Source of the DNA: Gracilinanus agilis
Lineage: Eukaryota
Direction of reading: 5' to 3'
Length of the DNA stretch: 63,871 bases
Assembly: GCF_016433145.1 (NCBI RefSeq)
Contig: NC_058132.1
Span: 36,023,604 to 36,087,474, forward strand
A model generated the notes under the pieces. That model did not search any database. It was not told the DNA's origin and worked only from the letters and a program-made list of their open reading frames with translations. Both the position numbers and the translations under genes were made by a program. This document shows, piece by piece, positions 1,119 to 63,410 of this stretch (position 1 is the first letter of the stretch; each line of letters starts with the position of its first letter).

Positions 1119-1899
1119 CCTTTAGTCTTCCGAGAAAATTAAAAGTTTCAGGGTAGATGCTGTTTGGTATTGGCTGAAGGATTTTCCTTGAAAGAGATTC
1201 CCTATATCAATGAAACTGTAAGTCCAGTGTGGAAATATCGAGAAGGCCAAAGAAGGAAAGTAAGTTGCTTGCAGGCAGGCCACTTGACCAATTCTAGAAC
1301 CTTCCTTCTGACTCCCAAGCTAGAATGCCTGCGCTGCATTTATTCATAGTCTCCAACAGAGGACCTTTAACTCTTTTCTCTCTCACCCCCTGAGTGCTTT
1401 CAGGCTTCTGACGTTGTAGGTGCAGAAAGTGAGCAGTCTTGGGAAGGGGAGGAGTGTCTTTTGGTTCCTGGAAGATTTCTCAGAAGTGCTAACACACACA
1501 CAGAGAACTGAAAACAGCTGAGGTTTCCCAGACTGCTGCCCTTGGGCGACTATGGGGGATCTAGATACACCCCGAATGGTCAGGGGGAGAGGGACTAGCT
1601 GTTGCCGGTGGCTTCGGCTCCGAGTTGCTCCCTGTTTGCCATGACGGGGCCCTGAAGGGTTCAGGGGAGGCGAGCATAGTACTGGGAAGTTGGGCAGACT
1701 GGATCTCCAGAATTTCGGAAGTTCCTGGACCTCCCCGTTTCACATCCTTCTCCCCTGCTCCAGCCACAGCACCAGGATCGTGGGTCTTGCTGACACAAGG
1801 TGGGGCAGGTGGCCTCTTGGACTCACCTGGGGTTGGAGTCCCAATCCGGACGTTTCCTCGAATAGCTTCTCCGGGCCTGAGGGCACAGGGCATCCCGGG

Positions 1900-2710
1900 C
1901 TCCCTTCAGCTTTGGTCAGAGGCACCCTGGCCGGAAACCTTCACCAAGCGAGACTTTTGCCATGCCACTGTGCTGTGCTCCGTGGTGGCCCGCTGCGCGC
2001 GGCCTGGGGAGGAGGCGGTGCGCCTTCGGGGCAGCGCTATTGGTGATGTTAGCGCTGCTCTGGCTGGGTGTCGAGGGTCCAGAGCTCATTCGCTTACCCC
2101 CGGGGGCCAGCCGGCCTCCTGGCACAAATACATCCGTGCGCCCGGACGCTGGTCTGCAGCCAGAGCAGCTGGAGGGTGGCGACGACGGAGAGGCCATGAG
2201 AACTCTGTGGTGCTCCCCAACACAGATCCAGGCCCCTCCTCTGCAGCCCTCAGAGCCCCGATTTCGCACCTTCCTCCGCCACCGGCATTGCCGCTATTTC
2301 CCGCTGCTCAGCGACCACCCCGACAAGTGCAGAGGGCGGGTGCGACTGCTACTGGCCATCAAGTCGGCCCCGGAGCAAGAAGAGCGGAGGGCGGCTGTGA
2401 GGCGCACGTGGGGTCAAGAACTGGCCGGCTCGGGCTCGGGCTCGGACGCCGAGGTGGTGCGCACAGTGTTCCTGCTGGGCAGGGGAGCCGCCGAGGAGGG
2501 GCCCGGAGGGGAGGCGCTTCGCCTGCGGCTGGAGCAGGAGGACAGGGCGCACGGGGACTTGCTGCGCTGGGACTTCGCTGACACCTTCTATAATCTCACC
2601 CTCAAAGCCGTCAACTTCCTGCGCTGGTTCCAACATCGCTGCCCCGGGGTGGAGTTCGTGTTCCAGGTAAGCGCAGCGAGAGAGGGATCCCCGCAGCGGC
2701 TGACCAGGGG
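1900..2710. promoter_or_regulatory. CpG island over the 5' part of the B3GNT7-like gene
   Basis: Visibly GC- and CpG-rich relative to the AT-rich, CpG-depleted remainder; boundaries approximate. Confidence 0.7.
1962..2666 (+). CDS. B3GNT7-like coding exon 1 (235 codons)
   Basis: Ends ...GAGTTCGTGTTCCAG|gtaagc (EFVFQ), strong donor; the ATG at 1962 is the most plausible start but an upstream exon cannot be excluded. Confidence 0.9.
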
Positions 2711-3930
2711 CAGGCACAGCAGCCCAGCCCTCTGCCAGGCTGAGAGAGGATCTCCTCTCAGGGGGTGCTGAAGAGGGAGCGGCTTGGATTGGACGGGCAA
2801 AGGCTGGGGAATTGGAGGGAGGGGAGAGCTGCCAGGGGACTAAAGTTTATCAGCCCAGCCCTAGAGCAAGAGGAAATTCGGATAATCTGGTCCGACCTCC
2901 TCGCTTTACGGAAGGAAAAGAGGAAGACTGGACGGTCCTCCCGCAAGTTAGTGGCACAGTCAGGACTAGTTCCCCAGGATGTAAAGGGCTGGAGAGAAAG
3001 GAGTGGAAGATCCAGGAGTGGAGAGGAATCAGGGCTTGGTGAGATTCGTGCCTGAGAGGAATAGGAGGGAATACAGGGCAGGAAACTGAGGGATAACAAT
3101 AAAAACGTACGGTATCCTTTGTGGGAGAATAACAGGGCACAACAGAAAGCGACGGCCCGGTAACTAAGGGGATTATAGTTAGAGAGAGTGCCGGACTTGG
3201 AGTGATAAAGACGAATTCAATCCTGCTTTGTGAAGCTGGGGATGGCCTTTAGCCGCTCTCGACCTCAGTTTCTCATCTGTAAATTGGGTAGAGGGGACTG
3301 CGCAGCGTCTGGCACGTAGTAGATGCTTAGTTGATTGGAAGATTCTAGGGTGCTTTGGCGTGGGGGGGGGGGGCGGGAGGGGAGAAGCAAGTACCAATCT
3401 ATGTTGAGATGAGCTGGGTCTATCCCCAGGGTGACGATGATGTGTTTGTACATCCTGCCAATTTGCTGGAATTCCTACGCTCTCGACAGGATGACCCTGG
3501 GCTGCCCCAGCTCTTTGTGGGGGACGTGATTCTCCGGGCCTGGCCCATTCGCAACCGGCACAGCAAGTATTACATCCCACCCGAACTCTTTAACCAGCCT
3601 TACCCGCCCTACGCTGGAGGCGGAGGCATCCTCATGGCGGCGCCGCTGGTCCGGCGCCTGCTGCCAGTCTCCGAGTATCTGCCCCTGTTCCCCATAGATG
3701 ACGTCTTCCTGGGCATGTGCCTGAAGCGGCTCGGGGTGGTGCCCCAGGCCCACCCAGGCTTCCGGACTTTCGGCATTCACCGGATCCGCACCAATCCCAT
3801 GAATCAGGATCCCTGCTTCTATCGAGAACTGCTCATGGTGCACCAGCTGGAGCCCCCTGCTCTGATCAGCATGTGGGAGGCTGTGCACAGCAAAGAACTG
3901 CACTGTGCCAAAACTGGCAGCTTCCTCTGA
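1962..3930 (+). CDS. GT31 beta-1,3-N-acetylglucosaminyltransferase, B3GNT7-like paralogue; join(1962..2666,3430..3930), 401 aa, type II Golgi membrane protein
   Basis: ATG in gccATG context; signal anchor [14 protein letters not shown]; intact motifs [95 protein letters not shown]; phase-0 GT-AG intron joins two ORFs with no stop or frameshift. Confidence 0.93.
3430..3930 (+). CDS. B3GNT7-like coding exon 2 (166 codons + TGA)
   Basis: ctatccccag|GGTGACGATGATGTGTTT (GDDDVF) through [13 protein letters not shown]. Confidence 0.92.
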
Positions 3931-4364
3931 CTCTGTTGCCCTTCGAGGGGCGCTGGGGGGGGAGGTGTCTCCCCAACCTATTTTGTCTCTACCTCAGTTC
4001 TTACAGGTAAAGTGGGATAGATAAGCAGTGGAACTACCGGCTTGGCTTGCCAGAGGATCTGGGTTCCGATTTCCCCCTCTCAACTTCTCTGGGCCTGTTT
4101 CCACATTGACAAAAGAAGGGGTTGGACTAGGGTGCCCTGAGGGCCCTTCTAGTTCTTGACCTGGGATAAAAGATCCACTGATGCGGGGCCCCATTCATTC
4201 TCTGCCTAGTTCTAACCCTAGCTCTAAAACCCGGAGGTGAGGAAGGCACTTTGGAAAAAGAGGAGGGGGATGTTAGCAAAGTGACTTTAGCAGGGCTGCT
4301 CTCTGGGGCCTGGGAAAGACCTGGGGCAGGGCTAGCCAGTAGTCTAGACCCTTATATTTGGAAG

Positions 4365-4590
4365 CAGCATTGAGTAGCTGCAGGAACTGAAGGAACACTA
4401 TATTTGGAATCTGAGGCTCTGGTTTCCAGTTCTAGCTTTGCCACAAATCTGCTGTGGGGAAAGTCACTGAGCCTCAGTTTCCTAGCCATTAAATGGGATA
4501 GCAATATTTCCTCTGTCTACCTCATAGGAACTATTGAGAGGATGGAATGAGACAATAAATTGTGAAAAGTGCTTTGTGATCATAGACACA
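4365..4590 (+). mobile_element. MIR-type SINE
   Basis: ctgagcctcagtttcc...aaatgggatagcaata...tgagaggatggaatgaga core. Confidence 0.75.
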
Positions 4591-5307
4591 CAGAATGGAT
4601 TATAGAGGCCCAAAGGGCAATGATTGAGATGGCCAGAATATAAGAAGTCACTGTTGAGAGCCTTTTCTTCTGGCAGACAGAGGAGACAGCTCCTTCGTTG
4701 GCTTGCTTTCTGCACCTCCTGCTCTAACTGGAGGGATGCCCTTTGTCTCTAGGTTGCTGTGGGCAGAGAGAAAGTAGACGGTTTTTCAGCCACAGTAAAG
4801 CGGGTCCAATGGAAGAAAATGCCTAAAGGGCATGTCTGACCAGCGGAAAGAGCCCTTTACCTTAAGGTAGGGCCAGGCTATGTGCCCAGAAGGGAGCAGA
4901 GTTTGAAGTCACCAGTGCAGTTTGGTGGTACTGTCAGGGAATGGGGAAAGATGCCTTTTTGTTTTCAGACAGGACATCAAGGGTTAATTCCTTCCCTCCT
5001 CCTCAGTTGAGTAATTCAAACCCAATTCAGCCAGGATTTCAAACCTAATCTGTAAGACACACAATAAATCAGATTCTGGCCTCTGATCTTATTTGCTTTT
5101 GGAGTCCCCAGTCACCATGGTGGCAGGGCATCTTGTCATTTCAAACACATCCCCTTCTGGGTTAGAAGCAGAGCTCTGCTGGCTGTACCTCAGAGTTAAA
5201 GAGAAAGTCAAAATGCTGAAGAATGGACAGAACTTGCCAAAGCCCTCAGTGTCTAGTCACTGGGCTTTTCCACCTCAGTTTATTGTTTTACATTGTTTTT
5301 GTTGCTC

Positions 5308-5509
5308 TTTTTTTTAAACCCTCACCTTCCATCTTTGAATCAATGCTGTGTATTAGTTCCTTGGCAGAAGAGCAGTACAGGTGAGGCAATGGGGGTGAAG
5401 TGACTTGCCCAGGGTCACACAGCTAGGGAGTGTCTAAGGCTAGATTTGAACCCAGGACCTCCTGGCCTCTGGGTCTGGCTCTCTATCCACTGAGCCACCC
5501 AGCTGCCCT
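5308..5509 (-). mobile_element. CORE-SINE (MAR1_Mdo-like)
   Basis: Poly-T, aaaccct...gacttgcccagggtcacacagctag...tccactgagccacccagctgccc. Confidence 0.9.
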
Positions 5510-11086: not shown

Positions 11087-11480
11087 GAGATGGAGAAATA
11101 GAGAGACTGAGAGACACAGAGGGTGAGAGACAGAAACAAAGACAGAGAGACACAGAAGCACAGAGANNNNNNNNNNNNNNNNNNNNNNNNNNNNNNNNNN
11201 NNNNNNNNNNNNNNNNNNNNNNNNNNNNNNNNNNNNNNNNNNNNNNNNNNNNNNNNNNNNNNNNNNNNNNNNNNNNNNNNNNNNNNNNNNNNNNNNNNNN
11301 NNGGAGAAATAGAGAGACTGAGAGACACAGAAGGTGAGAGACAGAAACAAACAGAGAGACACAGAAGCACAGAGAGTGAAAGACAGAGGGAGAGAGAGAC
11401 ACCGAAAGATAGAGATGGAGAGGCACAGAGTGAGAGACAGAGGCAGGCAGAGATGGAGACAGAGGGAAAGAGAGAGAGAT
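11020..11480. repeat. Degenerate (GA)n/(GACA)n simple-repeat block spanning a gap
   Basis: A roughly 75-nt unit ggagaaatagagagactgagagacacaga.ggtgagagacagaaac...gcacagaga occurs on both sides of the gap. Confidence 0.9.
11167..11302. other. Assembly gap (136 N)
   Basis: N run inside a GA-rich repeat. Confidence 1.
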
Positions 11481-23900: not shown

Positions 23901-24567
23901 GGGTCACCCTGCCTCACTTCATCTGGCAGAATGTGAACAGACAGTGCCACAAGAAAGAAAAAAAAAAGCACGACAGGAGAAGCACAAAGCCCAGCGCTAA
24001 TCTGACTACGAACAGCTCCCTTGCTGATGCCATTCTGTGCTGGGGTCAAGAGGCTGCAAGGTTCTGATGACATAACATTACTTTGGTTGTACCACACAGG
24101 GAGAAGCAAGTTTGGGTGGAGATCAGTTGGCAAAATGCATGTCATCCACTTTTAAGATTCTGAGTGCAATTTTTAAAGAAGGATGTTGTTGGGATTGTGT
24201 CTCTCCGTGGCTCCCTGTTCTACCCGTCGGTTGTGCTATTAAAGCCCATGACTTAAGTGACTTCTGGTTTTGTCCTAAGACAATGGCATCCCTTTCGTTA
24301 TCCAAGAGAGGGACCCCAAGTTGGGAAACTTCCAGTGCCGTCAGGACTGTGGCCTATATCTGAGAGGCAGCTTCTCTGGTCACATACATAAGGACCAACT
24401 GTAACTGGGGGATGCTACTGATGGCAGGGGAAGAGCCACCTGCAATTCAGGAAGAAAGGATTTGATAGTGCCATGTCCACAAGACTGATTTTACAAGAAA
24501 TGTCAGAGAATCAGAAAACTTGCTCAGTCACTAACGGAGACAAAGGAAACAAAATATTTGTCATGTG
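21000..24567 (-). other. CEP104: Probable CEP104 3' UTR (about 3.5 kb)
   Basis: Repeat-free, AU-rich stretch after the stop; minus-strand AATAAA at 21020..21025 followed by a U/GU-rich tract, and ATTAAA at about 21143..21148; end position inferred. Confidence 0.5.
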
Positions 24568-24689
24568 TCATCGTTTGGTATATGGCCTGCTAGTACTTTT
24601 GTTCAGGCCTCCTTTGGGGGTAGGAATCTTGCTTCCAAATTTGGATCCTGAGGTGCCCGATTTGGCCATCAATGAGTCTACTGCTTTCC
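24568..24689 (-). CDS. CEP104: CEP104 last coding exon (122 nt CDS)
   Basis: [42 protein letters not shown]; SxIP motif. Confidence 0.96.
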
Positions 24690-30600: not shown

Positions 30601-33600
30601 TAACTTTGGAAAAATATTTATTGGCCGCTACTCAACAAATGATCTAATTAGCATGAGAGGACAAATAAATTGAGTCAATGTAAACTTTCTTACAGAAAGT
30701 CACAAGAAGCTATACACAAAGGTTATTTGGGAAAGGAAAGAACTATTGTTCAGCATATAAAAGTACAGAGTATATTCTGGAAACATGGTTATCACAAGAA
30801 AGTAGGTCCAAAAACTCCTTAGGTTATTTCTGAAGTACAGAATGTTGCAGCCATTGTAGATGGAGAGTTGGAAGGGATGGATCTCAGATGTCATACAGTC
30901 TAATTCTTTTATTTTACAGTTGAGGAAACAGAGGCCCAGGGAGGTTGAGTGACCTGTCTAAGGTCACTCCAAGCCAAGTCACACCAAGCCAAATAATGGC
31001 TCTTAGAGCAAGACTCTTATCACTGATTGCAATAAATGAGATGGAGCAAATATGTAGAATCTGGCTCCAAATAAGGGTCAAATAAAGTCTTTCCCAACTT
31101 CAGAGGATGTTGGATGCTGAATGAAATGATAGAAGGTACAAGAAGATGAAGATCTGAGCTCCCCAAGACAGAGAATAGGAATGAAAAATCATTGGTAAAC
31201 TATTATAGTCATAGGAGGAGAGATTTTGAGGGGTTATCTAGCTATTCTCTTGGACTAACAAACCAAAGCCCAAGAGATGAGTGTGGGCCAAACCAATTTT
31301 CAAAGTTCCCCAAGGAAGGCGACATTTTCATTTTAAACAACTCCAATGTTTGGTTCCTCACAGCCGAGTTTAGTTTCATTAGGGAAGAGGAACAAGGCCT
31401 AGGATTGCCATTTACCCAACCAAACATTTTTTTAAAACTGAGGTGAAAGCATGTGAAGAAAGTTCAGAGTGTAAAATGGAAAGAGCAATGAATTTGGAGT
31501 AAGGAGAATAAATAGAGACAGGTTCAACTCTCTGGGCCAGTAGTTATGACTTGTGTTACCCTGGGCAAGTCACTTCATCTTATGGGACACCTCGATTTCC
31601 TCATCTGTAAAACTGGACAAGATGGACTTCTTATAAGGTCTCCATCAATTCTAAATCTATAACCCAAGGATACTTACACTCCTTTTCTTCCTCCATTATT
31701 GAAAGAAAGCAAACTGTTCTGGTGGTTTGATTAATAATGAATAAAATTAGTTTTTTCTCCTAAGGATTTCTTTCTTGTTAAATGCAGCTTTAACTTTCTG
31801 CCTTTTTTTGGGTCTTCTCACACACTGTGACTAAATTGTGCTAAGACTATTGACTATTTTGCTAGGATTGGAAGTGGCATCCGAATAATACATGACCTGT
31901 TTGCAGTGTTCACATCTTGTCAACATAGGACAATGCTTCCAGTAATGGAGATCTAAGCCTTCTTCTGTGAATGAGTCATCTCTTTCCCCACAAAAGATGC
32001 AAAGACTAAAATAAAACAGGAAAAGAAATATGGATGCAAATATCTGGTATGTTAACATTAATCTAGTCCTATTCTTACGTTTCCAAAATTTAATAATTCA
32101 GTATAACAAAAATCTCTTAAGTGACTGCTATGTACAAGACACTGCTATAAAGCAAAAACTATAGTCTTTGCCCTCAAGGAGTTTAGATTCCATTAGACAG
32201 ATATCAAATGTACACAGATAATTGAACACATCACGATTTATCAAAGGAGACAGCATTAATGAGTAGGGGTTATAGGAGGGGGCTCTTGGCCAGTCTTGGA
32301 CAAAGAGAAGCCACAGTTGAAGAGGTACCACACACCAAGGTGAAGGTCCTGAGGCAGGGCAGAGAATCTTCCATATGGGAAGCATCTAGTACTCCAGTTT
32401 GAAATGGAAGAATGAATGGAGAATAATATGAAATATGGCTAGAAAGGAAGGAAGGACTGTGGAAGGCCTCGAATATCAGGTTAAGGAATTTTGTATTTCA
32501 CTCAATAAACATTAAGTGCCTACTATGTGCCAGACACTGTATTACATGCTGGGAATACAGAAAGTCAAAAGACAGTTCCTGCCCGCAAGGAACTTACAAT
32601 CTAATAGGGTCCTAGGGTCACTAAACACTAAAGCAGTGGTTCCCAAACTTTTTTGGCCTACCGCCCCCTTTCCAGAAAAAATATTACTTAGCCCCCTGGA
32701 AATTAATTTTTAAAAAATTTTAATAGCAATTAATAGGAAAGATAAATGCACCTGTGGCCATCACCGCCTCCCTAGATCACTGCGGGACCCACCAGGGGGT
32801 GGTGGTGCCCACTTTGGGAATCACTTCACTAAAGGGTTTGTTTGTTTTTTTTAAAGCAGGGGGAGTGACATGGCCAGATCTGTACTTTGTTTTGGCCCTG
32901 GAGGATGTATTTGTTGTGCAGAGACTAGAGGTGGGAGGGCCAGCTAGGAAGTGATGACCACAGTTCAGATGAGAAGTGATGAAGGGCTGACCCAGGGGGC
33001 TGGCTATCTGGGAATATGGATGTGGGAAGTATTGAGGAAATTGAGTCCAAAACATTTGGCAGCAAGTCTAGAGATAAGGGAAAGCCCTCTGCTATCCAGC
33101 AATGGCCTCTTCATGGTCTTGATTTGTACATAGAAGTGAATGACCCAGATGGCAGGATGTTGTCCTTTACTGGAATTATAGAAGCATCTGGGATTCCAAG
33201 ATGAGAATTCCCCTGCTGGGGTGGATCATAGGAGTTAAACTCAATAGCCTTTGGGGTTCCTCCCAAATCAGAGTTTTTAGGAATCCAAAAGGGAAGGGTG
33301 AAACATATGAGTTCTAATAATGTCTGCATGACCTTGGGTAAGTCATTTGACTTCTGAGATGCCTGAGTCACTCAATTTATAAAAAGGGGTTATGACTTCC
33401 TCAGGGTTGTTCTATAACCTTTTAGACATTTAAGTACTCTGACCATGTGAGCCATTGTGAGTGTGTAGATGGTGGATCAGAAGAGAAATCTTATGTCAGA
33501 GGAAGAGTGTAAATGAGGCCCTAATTTCCACTCTGGATTTTAGATTTCACTCTGGCCATTTTGTATTCAGAAACTATTCCACAACTTCAAAACATTCCGA

Positions 33601-36600
33601 GTTTCTAATAACAACTCCCTGACCATTTGTAATGGAGAAGGAAGAAATAAAAGGGTCCTGACTTGCCAACTGTTGATGCTTACTGATTAAAGGAGAGAAT
33701 TTTTCTCATTCTTTTGACTATTAAATATAGGTTCAACAAACAAAACAATTACAATGAACTAAGGGGGATTTTTTTTACAGCCTGTTTATGTCATCACTGT
33801 TGTATCCTATGTACTCCAAAAGAGAACTATCCATGACTTTACTCACTAGTCCAAATAATTTGCAACGGAGGCATGATCATCGGGAATGTCTGGAGGATTA
33901 GCGTGAATTGCTTTCTTTTTGAAATCATCTGCAGAAATGAGCAAAAGAAAAGAAATAAGCAATTTAAGAGATTTCATTTCTAATATTTCTTTTCAAAACT
34001 GGCTATTATCAGTTCATTTGGAAATATTCTCTAACAATGTTCCTGACATTCAACATGCATAGGACCTATGGGTTAGAAAGTGGGCATCCCATGGAGTTTT
34101 TTTTTTTTTAATTTTTTTTTAAACCCTTAACTTCTGTGTATTGGCTCATAGGTGAAAGAGTGGTAAGGGTGGGCAATGGGGATCGAGTGACTTGCCCAGG
34201 GTCACACAGCTGGGAAGTGTCTGAGGCCTGATTTGAACCTAGGACCTCCTGTCTCTAGGTCTGACTCTCAATCCACTGAGCTACCCAGCTGCCCCCGATT
34301 CCTTTGGAGTTTTGAAAAGGATAAAAAAAATGTGATGTCATTCAGTGGCCTTGTCCAAGAATATTTCCTCTGTACAGGGGTTACGTGGTTTCCACACACC
34401 TTGGTTCTTCATCTTTCCCGAGTCACTTTCTTTTTCCTAAGATACAAAAAAAAAAAAAAAAAAAAAAAAAGAGGTCAAAGTTTGTTGGCTAAACATGAGG
34501 TTACATGAAGGACCTTTTAATGATGAGCCCAAGCTCCTGTCAAAGGGACATGTTTAGGTTTTGGTCTGGGTAGGGTTCATATATTTTGAGAAACAAAATA
34601 GAACAAAAACATTAATCAGAGGTAAGCAACCTGAAGTAAAATGAACTAATTTTTAAGCAGCCTGATCCCAGCTTCTCCATCAAATGCGTTCTGTTCTCTT
34701 AAATCCTTCCCATGTCTTTTCCCTCTTTCTTTTTCTAGTTCCTTTTTACTTCTCTGTTGCATAAGTTTGTCAGTGACTTCAATGAATAATGATTATGAGT
34801 CCTACTGGCAACAGATGGAGCTAAAGGTAATCCTATTAAAGGGAATATGTCAGAAAAATAAAAAACAATTCCTCAGTTACACAGTGACCAATTTTTAAAA
34901 GAGAATTATATTTTATAGAGTGATATAGTGATTAGGTTTAGGTACTTCCCAATCTCAATCCCAACCCCCAACCATTAATCAATTTTTAAAAAATTGGAAA
35001 TCCTGAAAATATCAATAAAATTGAAAGAAGAGCATTGAATTATTATTCAATAAATAAAATTAGGAGCTGGTTTTATGAAAAAATAAATAAAAGAGATAAT
35101 ATACTGGTTAATTTGATTAAAAAAAGAAGAAAACCAAATTACCAGTATCAAAAAAAAAAGTTAAAATCACAACCAATGAAAAATAAACTAAAGCAATTAT
35201 TGGGAGTGATTTTGCCCAATTATATGCCAATAAATTGGTCAATCTAAGTGAAATAGATGAATATTTATAAAAATATAAACTGCCCAGATTAACAAAAGAA
35301 GAAATAGACTACTTAGACAACCTCATTACAGAAAAAAATAATTGAACAAACCATCAAAGAATTCCCTAAAAGAAAGACTCCGGGGCCAGATGGATTCACA
35401 AGTGAATTCTATAAAACATTCAGAGAGCAATGAATGCCAATAGTACACAAACTATTTGAAAAAACATCGGAAAAAGGAATTCTTCCCAATTCTTTTTATG
35501 ACACAAATACGGTACTGAAACTTAAACCAGGAAGAGCTAAAAAAGAGAAAGGAAACCATAGACCCATTTCCCTAATGAATATTGATGCAAAAATTTTAAA
35601 TAAAATACTAACAAGGAGATTACAGCATTATCTCACAAGAATCATACACCATGACCAGACAGGTTATAACCATGAATGCAGGAATGGTTCAATATTAGGA
35701 AATCCATCAGCATAACTGGCCATATCAATAACAAAACCAAAATAAATATATGATTATTTCAATAGATTCAGAAAAAGTCTTTGATAAAATGCAATATCCA
35801 TTCCTTATAAAAAGATTAGAAAACATTGGAACAAAAAGAGCTTTCCTTAAAGTGATAAATAACATCTATCTAAAACCATTAGCAAGTTTTCTCTGAAGTG
35901 GTAATAAACTAGAACCCTTCCCAATAGGATTGGGGTTTGTAATACTGGATTAAGTAGCATCTGATCCCATCTATTACACACGTGCTGCTGGCTCTCTCGG
36001 GTACGGTTTCAGCTATCTGGCACAATTAGAAAAACTCACTCTGAACTTTCTTTCCAATGTGGATTTAAATAAAATCTTAGTATTCAAATTGGTTCTGACA
36101 TTTTTGTGGGAGGAAAAATATCCTCTGGATTATGCAAAAGAGGAAAACTCTAGATGTTACTAATCCTGCAGGAAGAGGATAATTTCTCTCATCTCACACA
36201 AAAAGTCCTAAGAGGTTTCTCTCTGAAAATTTACAACTTGGGTCAGCTAGTGAGTAGAGAGCTAGGCTTGGAGAAGGGAAATCCTGGGTTCAAATCTGGC
36301 CTCAGACACTTCCTAGCTGGGTGACCCTGGGCAAGTCACTTAAGCCCCATTGCCTAGCCCTTTCTGCTCTTCTGCCTTGGAACTAATACATAGTATTGAT
36401 TCTAAGATGAAGGTAAAAGAAAACTTACAACAATTCAAACTCTGATCTCTGAGCTGGACAATTAGACTATTTCACAAATGGTTTTCATTATCCAATGAGA
36501 AATGTTTATTTTAATATATCTCATAAAAAAAGAAAAAGAAAATCAGAGATTTAAAGAGAATCAAAGACCACAGTCTAACCTACATGGCCATGTGAGGAAT

Positions 36601-51600: not shown

Positions 51601-54600
51601 GGAGCTGCTTAGTGTTCATGTTGCTTTGGTTTTCACTGTGAAGGATAATGATCTTTGTACTGGAAAAAAGAACAAAAATGGTTGATAGTGAGCTGACATC
51701 AAAGGATAATTGAAAACAATAGTAACTGAACCTCTAAGTTGCCTTTGATAAATTCAGAATGTTTGGCCCAAATGAACTGTATACATCCTTGTGTACTGAA
51801 AAGGAAGGAAGAGAGAAAGCAGGAGAGAGGAAGAACTGCAGGAAGGAAGGAAGAAGAGAGAAGGAAGAAAGTAAGGAAGAAAAGAAGGAAGAAGGGAAGG
51901 AAGAAAGAAAAAAGGAAGAATAAGCATTTAAGCAGTATTTGCTGAATACTGTCTTGTACTAACTGCATGGCAGCACCCTGCTAAGAACAGATATGATTAC
52001 TGTAATATTTCTTTTTCTTTAAAAAAACAACAACGACCCAACCCTTATCTTCCATCTTAAAATCAATACTATGTATTGCTTCTAAGGCAGAAGAGTGGGA
52101 AGGGGTAGGCAATGGGGACTAAGTGACTTGCCCAGAATCACACAGCTAGGAAGTATCTGAGGTCAGATCTGAAACTGGGACTTCTCATCTCCAGGTCTGG
52201 TTCTCAATCCACTAAGCCACCCACCTGCCTCCTTGTCAGTAATATTTCAAAGATCATGGAAAGTGGGAGAGGTACCACAAGACTGGAGAAGAACAAATGT
52301 TATTCTGATGTTCAAAAGAGGGAAGACAAAAGAGTATTAGATTTGGATTCCTGGGAAAATTGTGGAAAGAATCATTAATGAGATGGTTGGGAGATATCTC
52401 AAGGAAAAAGCTGTGAAGACAAGGAGCCAGCAGGGCTTCATCAAGAAGAAGTTATACGATTCCAACCTTTATTTCCTTTTCAGACAGTTATTAAACTATT
52501 ATGAGCAGAGTGATGCCTCACTTGAATTTACCTAGATTTTAGCAGGATTTCTTATAAAGTATCCCATCCTATTCCTGTGGCAGAGACAGAGTAATGGGGA
52601 CAAGACATTAACATGACTGGATGCATTCAGACTGGGTCGGCCACCAGACTCAGTATAAGTGTTGAAAAGGTCTTCAGTGGGGTGCCTCAGGGATTGGCTG
52701 GATTCAAATGAGAAGATATTCTATAGATATCCATGTAAAAGATTACACTTGTGTTAAGAACAATCAGCTTCACAAGTTTACAAGTTGAGGCTCAGCAGGC
52801 AGAACCTAGCAGTAGTTGGTTGAAAAGGATCAGGGTGTCTGAGTATAGTGCACACTGAAAATAAGCTAGAGTATGGGACATGAGGCTACAGAGTGGTAAC
52901 GTCCAGGAATAAAGGTTTGCCAGACTGCATCTCAGATACTATATTCAGTTCTGGGCACTACTGTCTAAGGAATACACTGAAAAACTGGAAATCATCACTA
53001 GTGGAAGGTAACCATCTCAGTGAGGTGTCTTGTGTCCAAGCCATCTGAGCATCAACTAAAGGAACCAGGAACATGGAGCCTGGAGTGAAGAATGTGAGAA
53101 CACATGAGGCACACATCCAAGGACAGGAAAAGCTGTCTTGAGGAGGACTCCTAAACGTGTTTTATCTGACCTGGGATGCTGGAACCAGGAACTATGGTTA
53201 AATGTTGAAAAAAAAAAAGCAGATTTAGACTTTGAACCACAAAGAAACTTCCTAAAAATTGGAGCTATCCCAGAAGAAAAAGGGCTGCCCTGGGAGAGGG
53301 TATGTTCCCTTTCCCTGGAGAACTTTAAGCAAAGGCTGGATGGCCACCATTTTTGGGGATGGGGCCTGAGCATTCCTTTCAGATATGGTTGGACTGATTC
53401 ATGACTTCTCTGGTCCTCCCTAACTCTAAATTCCAAGATTCTGTGATTACCACAAAGCCCCTCAACTCATCAGGGCATCTGTGAGACTGGACAAAACCAC
53501 TAGAGGAAGGAGCATGATATGAAGGCTGGGAGTTTCCTTCTTCAGAGTATCAGTAACTTGTCTTACCCCTCACGCTTCACTTTGTAATTGTGGACAGATG
53601 ACCTTGGGGCAGTTGCCTGTTGCTATGTGGAGCCCTAAATCACAGGAGAAAAGCAGGCCAAGGAGATAGAAGTGGCCAATCCTAGGGAGTGGCAACAACA
53701 AAATAGGCTGGACTTCTTTGGGTGGTATATCTTTAATTTCTTGGCGATGTCTGACAAATTCAGTTATCTAGATACAAGAATTATCTGAAGTATACGGTCA
53801 TCTTTGAAAGGGTAATGCATTATGTTTCTTTTTAAATTCCTGACCTTAATCTGTAAATATATTTATGACAATCCAATTACTGGCTTATTGAGAAATGAGG
53901 AGACTATAGAGTACACAAAACAGAATTCTAAGGAAATGCTTTATATTCCTCCAATATTTCAAGCTTCCTAGGAAAATGGTTACAGAAATTCATCTTTCTA
54001 AAGGACCAACATTCTTACCCAAAATATGATCCATCTAATCCTGAGTCCTCTGAACTCTGTCCAAGATAATGATCAATCAACTTCTCTCTGGAGGTCTTCG
54101 GGGACAAGGAAAAAAACAAACTTAATATCACGGAGGATTCTATACTCAAAACAGAAAAACTATTTTAAAAAACAAACTTTTACCTTCTGTTTTAGAATTC
54201 ATTCTAAGTATCGATTCTAAGGCAGAAGAATGGTAAGGGCTATGCAATGGGGGTTAAGTGATTTGCCCAGGGTCACATAGCTAGGAAATACCTGAGGCCT
54301 CATTTGAACACAGGTCTTTCCAAATCCAGGCCTGGCATTCCATCCCCTGTGCTACCTAGCTGCCCCAGAAAAGCTATGTTGTAAAGACAGCACCACTTAA
54401 TAGCCTGCGGATTCTGAATGGCTCAGTGTCCCTTGTTAACTAGAGAAAGAGTCAGAAATACCAGATGAAAGAAAAGTTTCACTACAATATAGGAATTAAA
54501 ACTAGTCACTTTACTATTAATTTTGTTGGGTTTTTTTTTGCATGACAGTTTGATTATACTTTTTTTTCCCAAGAAACACTTTCATTTAGAAATAATTAAT

Positions 54601-57600: not shown

Positions 57601-59974
57601 ACTAGACAAAACATTTTAAAAGAGTGCTACAACTAATGGGGAAGGTTGATTAATCTTACCTGGTTATATAAGTTGTATCTATTGACATGGTTTTTATGAA
57701 AAATCAACTTGAGAAATTGTCCTACAGCATCCACATAAACTGATTTTAGTTCTCGAGCCTTACATCCTGTTTTTTCATTGTCGCAGAGAGACACATAACT
57801 GCAAGGACCAAGCAAAATTAAAGAATTTTATGTCTATAAGCATGTGCAATTAAGTAAATTGTTCCTTCATTCCTACTGGATAGTTATATTGAAAAAAAAA
57901 AAAAAAACAAAAACCAACCCACCACTACCCAATACAGAGAAAACTGGTGAAAAAAAGAATTGCCCCATAATGAGTGGCTGAATTATTATCTGGAGCAATA
58001 TACTTCTTCGAAGGGAAAAAGCTCTGTATCTAAAAAGCCAAATGAGAACTAGTAATAAAAGTTACCATAGTGATGTGGTTTAAATCTTTTAACACTGTAT
58101 GCAAATAAACTAACAATGTTATGTCAACATGATCCTAGTTGGCAGTTTACACTGAGAGTTGATCTATATTTTATGAAGCGCTGGGAATACATTCTTGACT
58201 GATAATTCAACTTTTAGGAATTATGTTCTTTCTATATCCACAGCTATTGCCCAGTTATGAATGATTAGGCAATGAATTGTGAAGCTAAACCAAACTATTT
58301 CCTTTGATTATTAAAGCCACACAAAACTGGTACTGAAGCTCTATTTCCAAGAAATTATGCAAATTTTGACCCAGGTAGAAATTTAGATCACAAGACTGAC
58401 TAAAGTTAAGAATTAACTTTGTACTTTCATTCTTACCCAAGCCTTCGAAATCGCTCTGCTTGATATGGTGCAAAATATTCAGGCAAACTGTCGCTAATAT
58501 AAAACTCGATTTTACTGGAAATCATATACTGGTGAGCAAGTAATTGAAGTTTTCGAACTCGGCATCTCTCCACCATCTGAAGGACAATTTCTTGAGGAAA
58601 CTGGCAAAATCTGAAAGAGAATAAATTTCTCCAAATTAAGTTTGTATTTACAAACCTGGCCTCTAGATGTCATTTAACATGAGTCTTTCTTAATTTCAAA
58701 TTTCTAGTGAAACATTTTGAAATCATTTTGTGAAGATATCTGCTTCCTAACTAAGCAAAAATGTGATGGGATCGAAAGATTCCAACCAGAAGTGAATGCT
58801 CTGTAACAGATGCCATGAGGACTGGATGAAGGAATTGAGTATTGTTAGCCCAAAGAAGATGAGATCAGGTGGGGACATGAAGAATCTGAGAGGCTATTTC
58901 CATGGAAGAAAGGTTAGACTTATTCTTGGGGGAAGGCCAAAATAGGAGCAATCTGAAAAATCCAAAAAAAGACAACAGCGTTTGTACCCCTTAGGACAGC
59001 TCTCCTGAACCTGCAGACATAGAGTTAACTCTGCCCTGATCTTGGGAGACTTTATTGAAGAATACTTTCCTCTGCTTTCCTGAGATGTGCTTGACCTAAG
59101 GGAATTGTCTTGTGTTGAAATCAGGGGGCCACTGGGACATACTCAGTTATAAACAAGAAGTACACATTTTACATGGGGTAAGTGGCCTAGAGCAGCACTG
59201 GTGAACCTTTTAGAGATCACACGTCCAAACTGCAACTTCAAGCCAACTTGTGAGCCCCCCACACTACCCCAGAGAGTGGGGGGAAGAAGTGCTGGCATTG
59301 GGTGGCTGGACAGAAGGGCAGGACATGTAACAAGTGTCCTCGGGGGAGAGGGGGAGGGGAGCAGCCCCCCCTCCAAGGCCACCATGGCTTCGCCAACATG
59401 GGTCTAGAGTCAAAGCAAGTCTAGGTACTTCCCACCTTAAGAACAGATCATTTCACCTTACAAAACACATAAGCAGAGATCTCTGACGTTATCAAGATTA
59501 GTCCTTCACTTAGTAGAGCCTCTTATGTATAGAAGTAACTTTAATAACCCATAAGTAAGTCCTGAACTGAAAACTAAATTATTGGCTATTCATTTGGCTC
59601 TTGTCAACAGTAAGCCAAAGTAAGTGACAATCTCTAATTTAGCCTGCGTTTAACATGTACCCATCGAAGGCACTGGGGGTCCAAATACAGAGATGACAGA
59701 CTCTATGCTCAGGGAATTCGTAATTTAATGGAGGCGAGAAAGGAACACAAAGAATTTATGACACAAGGAAATAGGGGCTAAGTAAGAGCAAGAGTGCCTC
59801 AGTGGATAGAGAACCAGGCCTAGTAGAGATAGGAGGTCCTGGGTTCAAATCTGGTTTCAGACACTTCCTAGCTGTGTGACCCTGGTAAGTCACTTAACCC
59901 CTATTGCCTAGCCTTTACCACACTTCTGCCTTGGAACCATTACATAGTATTGATTCTAAGATGGAAGGTAAGTG

Positions 59975-62852: not shown

Positions 62853-63410
62853 ATTTTTTTTTCTTTTTAAAATTTTAAACCCTTAACTTCTATGTATTGA
62901 CTTATAGGTGGAAGATTGGTAAGGGTAGGCAATGGGGGTCAAGTGACTTGCCCAGGGTCACACAGCTGGGAAGTGTCTGAGGCCGGATTTGAACCTAGGA
63001 CCTCCTGTCTCTAGGCCTGACTCTCAATCCACTGAGCTACCCAGCTGCCCCNNNNNNNNNNNNNNNNNNNNNNNNNNNNNNNNNNNNNNNNNNNNNNNNN
63101 NNNNNNNNNNNNNNNNNNNNNNNNNNNNNNNNNNTTTGAACCTAGGACCTCCTGTCTCTAGGCCTGACTCTCAATCCACTGAGCTACCCAGCTGGCCCCA
63201 AACCATTCTTTTTTTTTTTTTTTTTTTTTTAAAACCCTTGTACTTTTGGTGTATTGTCTCATAGGTGGAAGATTGGTAAGGGTGGGCAATGGGGGTCAAG
63301 TGACTTGCCCAGGGTCACACAGCTGGGAAGTGGCTGAGGCCAGGTTTGAACTTAGGACCTCCTGTCTCTAGGCCTGACTCTCACTCCACTGAGCTACCCA
63401 GCTGCCCCCC
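62853..63410 (-). mobile_element. Stacked young SINE1_Mdo-type copies around a gap (62853..63051, 63135..63199, 63209..63410), followed by further older SINEs to about 63790
   Basis: Near-consensus copies sharing the gaagattgg variant and ccatt(c)tttt flanks. Confidence 0.9.
63052..63134. other. Assembly gap (83 N)
   Basis: N run between near-identical SINE ends. Confidence 1.

Follow-up and report, generated by a model that had tools for sequence, protein, structure and literature searches.

The B3GNT11 subfamily of GT31 glycosyltransferases was named by Petit, Teppa and Harduin-Lepers (2020; PMC8022947), who described it in sharks, ray-finned fishes, Latimeria and frogs, including Nanorana parkeri, and identified it as an ohnologue of B3GNT7 that was lost in human. 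According to the same paper, B3GNT and B3GALT genes have, as a rule, a coding sequence (CDS) in a single exon, the exception being amniote B3GNT3. Marsupials and paleognath birds are not mentioned in its main text, two further papers mentioning the gene as b3gnt7l contain no functional data, and we found no opossum protein accession numbers in the literature searched. Two relatives with described activities are B3GNT7, a keratan-sulfate or sulfated poly-N-acetyllactosamine (poly-LacNAc) β3-N-acetylglucosaminyltransferase (β3GlcNAc-transferase), and human B3GNT2, a poly-LacNAc synthase with several crystal structures (6wmm, 7jhk, and others). Here, we analyzed a 63,871-nt stretch of the Gracilinanus agilis genome (NC_058132.1, positions 36,023,604 to 36,087,474 of the forward strand; hereafter, the window, to which all coordinates refer), which carries a GT31 gene next to CEP104. 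We assign to the following reading a probability of roughly 0.85: the gene is the marsupial orthologue of B3GNT11 (b3gnt7l), it is intact, selected and, in a relative, spliced, and its history includes the gain of an intron and a burst of change on the marsupial stem followed by constraint.

When 1.84 billion cluster representatives were searched exhaustively with HMMER, the marsupial cluster scored 714 bits, fish b3gnt7l 382, true B3GNT7 361, hagfish 316, and all other single-domain B3GNTs at most 265. An orthologue is present in every marsupial order sampled (n = 5), that is, in Didelphimorphia (Gracilinanus and Monodelphis, XP_001376755.2), Microbiotheria (Dromiciops), Dasyuromorphia (Sarcophilus, Antechinus, Sminthopsis), Peramelemorphia (Macrotis), and Diprotodontia (Vombatus, Phascolarctos, Petaurus, Trichosurus, Notamacropus). 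The annotated models from these 12 species include ten full-length ones, one available as isoform X2 only, and one of low quality (Sminthopsis). Outside marsupials, the best 120 of 2396 matches are proteins named "b3gnt7, like" or "B3GNT7-like" and a few unnamed or hypothetical ones; their holders are teleosts, gar, sturgeons, coelacanth, sharks, rays, chimaera, frogs, salamanders, and caecilians. The sole bird cluster among these 120 comes from paleognaths, namely, two kiwis (Apteryx mantelli and A. rowi), emu (Dromaius), cassowary (Casuarius), and ostrich (Struthio), and the kiwi CDS has a GC content at third codon positions (GC3) of 0.95. No eutherian, monotreme, neognath, or non-avian reptile member was seen among the same 120 protein matches, no genomes having been searched. 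Together with the published loss in human, this agrees, at the level of protein databases, with the proposal of the first-pass annotation that the gene was lost in eutherians. The presence in paleognaths only among sauropsids suggests that B3GNT11 was independently lost in neognaths and perhaps in other reptiles. High scores against the query were also observed for proteins of 1200–2160 aa with 4–7 tandem B3GNT-like domains (P0216–P0219 and similar), which probably reflect gene models that merge tandemly arrayed genes of certain non-mammalian genomes.

In a maximum-likelihood tree of 74 proteins (LG+C20 with posterior mean site frequencies, 401 columns), the marsupial proteins form a clade with support 100/100, which is sister to the paleognath copies (100/99), and the two groups are nested in the b3gnt7l/B3GNT11 clade (99/98). 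The latter is sister to the clade of true B3GNT7 (100/99), which includes platypus and five marsupials: Monodelphis, Vombatus, Notamacropus, Sarcophilus, and Macrotis each have a separate true B3GNT7 alongside B3GNT11. Constraining the marsupial clade to group with B3GNT7 costs 23.9 log-likelihood units and is rejected by the approximately unbiased (AU) test with p = 0.035. In the reading favored here, B3GNT11 is the whole-genome-duplication sister of B3GNT7, as the published ohnology has it. The tree, the AU test, and the synteny described below support the earlier proposal of an ancient B3GNT7 paralogue, comparable to fish b3gnt7l, that was kept in marsupials.

The obvious competitor is a true B3GNT7, or an orthologue of another named B3GNT, relocated to the vicinity of CEP104. 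The RefSeq name of the gene, B3GNT7-like, and the score of true B3GNT7, close behind that of fish b3gnt7l (361 and 382 bits; 55–56% identity), are compatible with it. It is opposed by the separate marsupial B3GNT7, which clusters with the sampled eutherian and platypus B3GNT7, by the position of our gene in the B3GNT11 clade and the AU test, and by the same location beside CEP104 in fish, frog, and kiwi. A one-to-one B3GNT7 orthologue is expected inside the B3GNT7 clade and as the only such gene of its genome, and this is not what we observed. We therefore reject relocation, which we regard as extremely improbable. The B3GNT11 orthologue and B3GNT7, as sister subfamilies, have 55% identity in the catalytic domain and share motifs such as [38 protein letters not shown] and EPCF/DPCF, but differ in the locus and the clade, in the acceptor loop, where B3GNT7 has Arg (ARPIR) and our protein has Trp (AWPIR), and in the change of TLKE to TLKA. 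The tammar (Notamacropus eugenii) has, apart from its regular B3GNT7 (P0452), a further protein named B3GNT7-like (P0458), which is 70% identical to eutherian B3GNT7 and may have arisen by a lineage-specific duplication of true B3GNT7.

The genomic neighborhood is conserved. In the window, CEP104 occupies the minus strand, with the N-terminal domain exon at 58436–58669 and a zinc-finger exon at 31834–32097 (Pfam PF21038, E = 3.7e-20; PF21039, E = 7.5e-16), and the closest CEP104-like exon that could be detected is at about 24.5 kb, where kiwi CEP104 gives a tblastx match (24542–24645). The two genes are indeed arranged tail-to-tail, as had been noted from the sequence. In Betta, the order is NPHP4, DFFB, C1orf174-like, b3gnt7l (+), CEP104 (-); in kiwi (Apteryx) and in the frog Spea, it is LRRC47-like (-), the gene (+), CEP104 (-). 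The adjacency proposed as a check on orthology is thus common to Betta, kiwi, and Spea, and B3GNT11 would have stood beside CEP104 at least since the ancestor of bony vertebrates. A search for LRRC47 in the window with the kiwi neighbor yielded spurious GC-rich matches only, the sequence upstream of the gene being limited to 1961 bases including a gap; judging by kiwi and frog, LRRC47 of G. agilis should lie outside the window.

The gene is encoded by two open reading frames (ORFs) of the plus strand, 1962–2771 and 3355–3930, which join across the donor CAG/gtaagc (2666/2667) and the acceptor ctatccccag/G (3429/3430). The spliced product comprises 235 + 166 = 401 aa, and both exons are 100% identical to RefSeq XP_044526903.1 (P0001, "B3GNT7-like [Gracilinanus agilis]", 401 aa). 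This protein, equal to both exons, was used in the full-length analyses, while the exons were also searched individually. The exon junction is contiguous on human B3GNT2 crystal chains (residues 210/211 in 6wmm, FVFK/GDDDVFV). A CpG-rich block at approximately 1700–2700 forms an island over exon 1, with a CpG observed/expected ratio of 0.68–0.74, compared with 0.22 in the whole window.

The single-exon structure of the B3GNT11 subfamily is broken here by the 763-nt intron at 2667–3429. By contrast, the CDS is uninterrupted in Betta, Callorhinchus, Spea, and kiwi, where the intron is absent. All marsupial models have gene spans longer than the CDS, by 0.7–2.4 kb in Monodelphis, Petaurus, and Vombatus, whose genes span 1922, 3449, and 3576 bp, respectively, and a Logan genomic contig of an Australian diprotodont that carries exon 2 (L003) has the same acceptor and 92% identity across the last 60 intronic bases, which is a comparison of a didelphid with a diprotodont. 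Taken together, these comparisons date the gain of the intron to the interval between the divergence from sauropsids and the marsupial crown. The split CDS is a derived state of the marsupial lineage and not evidence against orthology. The phase-0 intron was inserted immediately before the codons of the DxD motif; the gain neither cost nor added a codon, and the insertion site, which now reads CAG/G, includes the substitution K235Q that converts an AAG/G-type sequence to CAG/G. Retention of the intron leads to a stop at 2769. No copies of the intron were found elsewhere in the window, no similarity was detected between the intron and its flanking exons, and the 5-nt repeat at the intron ends represents the splice consensus alone. 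Two papers (PMC3257199, PMC12357937) describe intron gain as extremely rare in vertebrates.

The acceptor side of the intron may be used in two ways. In RefSeq, the isoform X2 models of Notamacropus (P0002) and Antechinus (P0005) are shorter by exactly 20 residues, GDDD through SRQ, and this matches an in-frame AG located 60 nt into exon 2, which is present in G. agilis at 3489/3490. Judging from the sequence, splicing to this site would delete the DxD motif and produce a catalytically dead isoform. The corresponding joint, 2666/3490, is not among the joints in the sequencing-run contigs of a close relative that are considered next.

These contigs, 93–96% alike to the window, were aligned on positions 1400–5400. 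One of them, from run X18, covers 1760–2662 and 3426–3817, and the sequence left out between the two parts is exactly 763 nt long and bounded by GT..AG. A contig of 1868 nt from run X3, with depth 52, begins at the boundary of exon 2 and reaches 5212, so that a 3' untranslated region (UTR) of about 1.3 kb is indicated; the contigs are strandless, and an overlap of the 3' UTR with the 3' end of CEP104 is possible. Run X1 from the same organism covers the exon–intron boundary and a part of the intron and has no spliced joint. As the unspliced locus is seen in this run, a retrocopy is an unlikely source of the spliced form. The comparison of exon 2 between the window and L003 gave dS = 0.308, dN = 0.033, and ω = 0.106 for this single pair of a didelphid and a diprotodont; the amino acid identity of exon 2 is 93%, while the 3' UTRs are only 69–71% alike. 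Branches within the marsupial crown are 0.02–0.14, no longer than the B3GNT7 branches of the same species. We conclude that the gene is functional and intact, evolves under purifying selection across marsupials, and is spliced into mRNA in a close relative. Neither of the outcomes that the first-pass annotation had named as damaging, an unexpressed gene and dN/dS near 1, was observed, with the limit that the spliced contig comes from a relative and that the RNA label of its run is a guess.

The same data bear on whether the locus is a decaying relic, an unexpressed or non-functional remnant with an "intron" drawn by annotation pipelines over a disruptive insertion. A coding intron is atypical for B3GNT genes (PMC8022947), the stem branch is long, and the Sminthopsis model is marked as low quality, all of which would fit a remnant. 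Decay is hard to reconcile with ω of 0.106 at dS of 0.31, with consensus splice sites and an acceptor region conserved between American and Australian marsupials, with a contig of the relative from which the intron has been precisely removed, and with an open frame kept in five marsupial orders. These observations largely refute the relic explanation and leave it very improbable.

The B3GNT11 orthologue retains the hallmarks of GT31 enzymes. Both exons match Pfam PF01762 (Galactosyl_T) above the cut-off of 23 bits, exon 1 with 50.3 bits at profile positions 1–84 and exon 2 with 57.6 bits at positions 88–192, the two matches being contiguous; the matches of exons 1 and 2 to the human B3GNT2 chain have E = 1.9e-28 and 5e-39. 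The AlphaFold2 model has a mean predicted local distance difference test score of 83, mostly above 90 in the catalytic domain. Human B3GNT2 accounts for all of its top 27 PDB matches, with B3GALT5 and B3GALT6 next, and the template modelling scores against B3GNT2 structures, normalized to the target, are 0.79–0.86 at 42–45% identity. A hydrophobic stretch at approximately 21–37 follows an Arg-rich tail, and the model places a helix at 20–34 and a disordered stem at 36–73. This is consistent with a type II topology with a short N-terminal tail, one signal anchor, and a luminal stem. The motifs are HRHCRYFP (107–114), EDRAHGD (193–199), TLKA (213–216), GDDDVFV (236–242), RAWPIR (271–276), PIDD (323–326), MNQDPCF (358–364), and VH (372–373), and the conserved cysteines are C84, C110, C123, C227, C332, C364, and C394. 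The gene model, the motifs, and the identity to the RefSeq protein thus bear out the initial description of an intact 401-aa type II GT31 enzyme, and the metal site DDD, the PIDD region, the C-terminal VH, and the expected cysteines listed in it were all located.

D237 and D239 are invariant among 52 sequences, and D237–D239 align to D245–D247 of B3GNT2, whose structure defined the roles of donor, acceptor, and catalytic residues (PMC7948508). Further correspondences (B3GNT2 residues first) are the GlcNAc O4 contact (K149, K134); the uracil contacts (D215, T216, F217, L220, K223; D207, T208, F209, L212, K215); the acceptor contacts (I276, A279, Y289, Y303, F356; I269, A272, Y282, Y296, F349); the Gly loop (305–307; 298–300); the xED motif with the catalytic base D333 (I331-D332-D333; I324-D325-D326); and the metal ligand (H376, H373). 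Overall, 19 of the 21 checked residues are kept, the exceptions being L151, replaced by A136, and H282, replaced by I275. The two proteins share the GT-A fold, the DxD motif, the Gly loop, the Asp base, the C-terminal His, the uracil-binding Asp and Lys, and most acceptor residues one to one, but they belong to different B3GNT subclusters and have unrelated stem regions.

Family knowledge and the conserved residues predict a Golgi type II membrane protein with the GT-A fold, acting as a metal-dependent inverting β-1,3-N-acetylglucosaminyltransferase. In such an enzyme, D237–D239 and H373 would hold a divalent metal and UDP-GlcNAc (uridine diphosphate N-acetylglucosamine), and D326 would deprotonate O3 of the terminal galactose on a LacNAc-type acceptor, so that the enzyme would extend poly-LacNAc or keratan-sulfate-like chains. 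By analogy with B3GNT7 and B3GNT2, the reaction is probably the transfer of GlcNAc from UDP-GlcNAc to O3 of Gal in Gal-terminated LacNAc-like chains. The roles in the shell or mucoid coat, in milk, and in keratan sulfate that had been put forward earlier are pure speculation.

Compared with the described members of B3GNT11/b3gnt7l, the marsupial gene has the same clade, the same CEP104 neighborhood, the same coexistence with B3GNT7, and 50–62% identity in the catalytic domain. It differs in the intron-split CDS, where fish, chimaera, frog, and kiwi have one exon, and in the strong acceleration on the marsupial stem. In the 74-protein tree, this branch measures 0.99 substitutions per site, with a further 0.55 on the amniote stem, while other internal branches of B3GNT11 and B3GNT7 are 0.01–0.36. 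Of the 125 columns that are conserved and have the same residue in B3GNT7 and non-amniote B3GNT11, 22 are changed in marsupials and 8 in paleognaths. In 14 of the 22, the change is fixed in all marsupials sampled: W93P, L106R, N118D, V132A, I137P, Q187R, L189R, I200L, Q202R, F210Y, E216A, K235Q, F302I, and V371M. The substitutions in TLKA and RAWPIR, which the first-pass annotation had placed near the active site, are both among the marsupial lineage-specific states. A burst of amino acid change thus appears to have occurred on the marsupial lineage, with a subsequent return to strong constraint.

This pattern could mean neofunctionalization, in which the B3GNT11 descendant acquired a new acceptor or donor specificity on the marsupial stem and makes a marsupial-specific glycan. 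It would account for the long stem next to short crown branches, for the fixation of 14 of the 22 changes, several of them adjoining donor or acceptor residues, and for the gain, on the same lineage, of an intron together with an acceptor that skips the DxD motif. However, the catalytic residues and most substrate-contact residues of B3GNT2 are unchanged. Moreover, many of the stem changes are to Arg, Ala, or Pro and fall in a GC-rich exon (GC 0.67, GC3 0.78), so that GC-biased fixation is a serious alternative to adaptation and fits the data equally well without it. We consider neofunctionalization unlikely. A more specific version, in which B3GNT11 was re-tooled on the marsupial stem, the fixed substitutions changing its specificity and the new intron with the alternative acceptor adding a dead isoform, seems to us still more doubtful; if true, marsupials would have a regulated, lineage-specific glycan-extending activity.

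Several points weigh against our assignment of the gene to B3GNT11 as a conserved, functional enzyme. The AU rejection of the B3GNT7 placement is only moderate, dN/dS was calculated from one species pair and for exon 2 only, and the runs with the spliced form were guessed to be RNA and come from a relative of G. agilis. For G. agilis itself, no run is recorded as RNA, and the one run that strongly carries the locus probably stems from the DNA sample of the assembly. Some of the 22 changed columns adjoin functional residues: F210Y and E216A border the uracil cradle and Lys215, K235Q comes before the DxD motif, F302I comes after the Gly loop, and the acceptor loop contains W273 and I275. As far as such changes can be read from the sequence, the specificity may have shifted. 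In addition, no enzyme assay of any B3GNT11 was found in the literature searched, and the donor and the acceptor are deduced from paralogues.

The features of the locus are listed in Table 1. Three runs of N, representing assembly gaps or masked sequence, are at 763–1118, 11167–11302, and 63052–63134, the second one within a long CT/GA-rich simple repeat at approximately 10.9–11.5 kb. Just downstream of the 3' UTR, positions 5286–5400 have a contig depth of 29,000–414,000 in the runs of the relative, with many loose ends and T-rich flanks, and represent a very high-copy interspersed repeat. A short ORF motif, LAQGHTA.KCLR.DLN/KLG...VSR.DSQSTE/K, recurs at 34191–34300, 52127–52230, 62947–63261, and other places and marks copies of a marsupial short interspersed element in CEP104 introns; also in a CEP104 intron, ORFs at 34990–35712 resemble, by eye only, a fragment of a reverse transcriptase (ORF2) of the long interspersed element type.

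Table 1. Features of the B3GNT11 locus in the G. agilis window
Feature	Position	Strand	Basis
Minimum 5' UTR and promoter-proximal part of the CpG-rich block	1760–1961	+	Spliced contig of run X18 starts at 1760
Coding exon 1, 235 aa, with a short cytoplasmic tail, a signal anchor (residues about 20–37), a poorly conserved stem, first half of the GT31 domain to FVFQ	1962–2666	+	
Intron, 763 nt, phase 0, GT..AG	2667–3429	+	Joint in run X18 contig; same acceptor in L003
Coding exon 2, 166 aa and stop: DxD D237–D239, acceptor loop, Gly-rich loop 298–301, catalytic base D326, metal-binding H373	3430–3930	+	
Possible alternative 3' splice site ctctcgacag/g, 60 nt into exon 2, in frame	3480–3490	+	
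3' UTR, at least about 1.3 kb; poly(A) signals at 4488, 4554, 5063	3931–5212	+	Run X3 contig
CEP104, tail-to-tail neighbor, synteny anchor	24542–58669	-	Pfam; tblastx with kiwi CEP104

RefSeq already contains an annotation of the gene itself, for Monodelphis under an old accession (XP_001376755), and the subfamily already bears the name B3GNT11. The new results are the explicit assignment of marsupial "B3GNT7-like" genes to B3GNT11, the patchy distribution among amniotes, with marsupials and paleognaths as the only holders among annotated proteins, and the gain of the intron, the burst on the stem with strong constraint afterwards, and the junction-level evidence of splicing. Nothing is overturned by these observations, as genes kept by marsupials but lost by placentals are common; they are a useful lead for glycobiologists and for researchers of intron gain rather than a surprise. 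For the latter, the locus provides a clean, datable gain of a spliceosomal intron in a vertebrate gene family of single-exon genes. For the former, B3GNT11 belongs to the small number of vertebrate GT31 subfamilies without biochemical characterization, and the mammals commonly used as models lack it. Among mammals, we found B3GNT11 in marsupials only, the laboratory opossum included; marsupials therefore offer a mammalian system for identifying its product.

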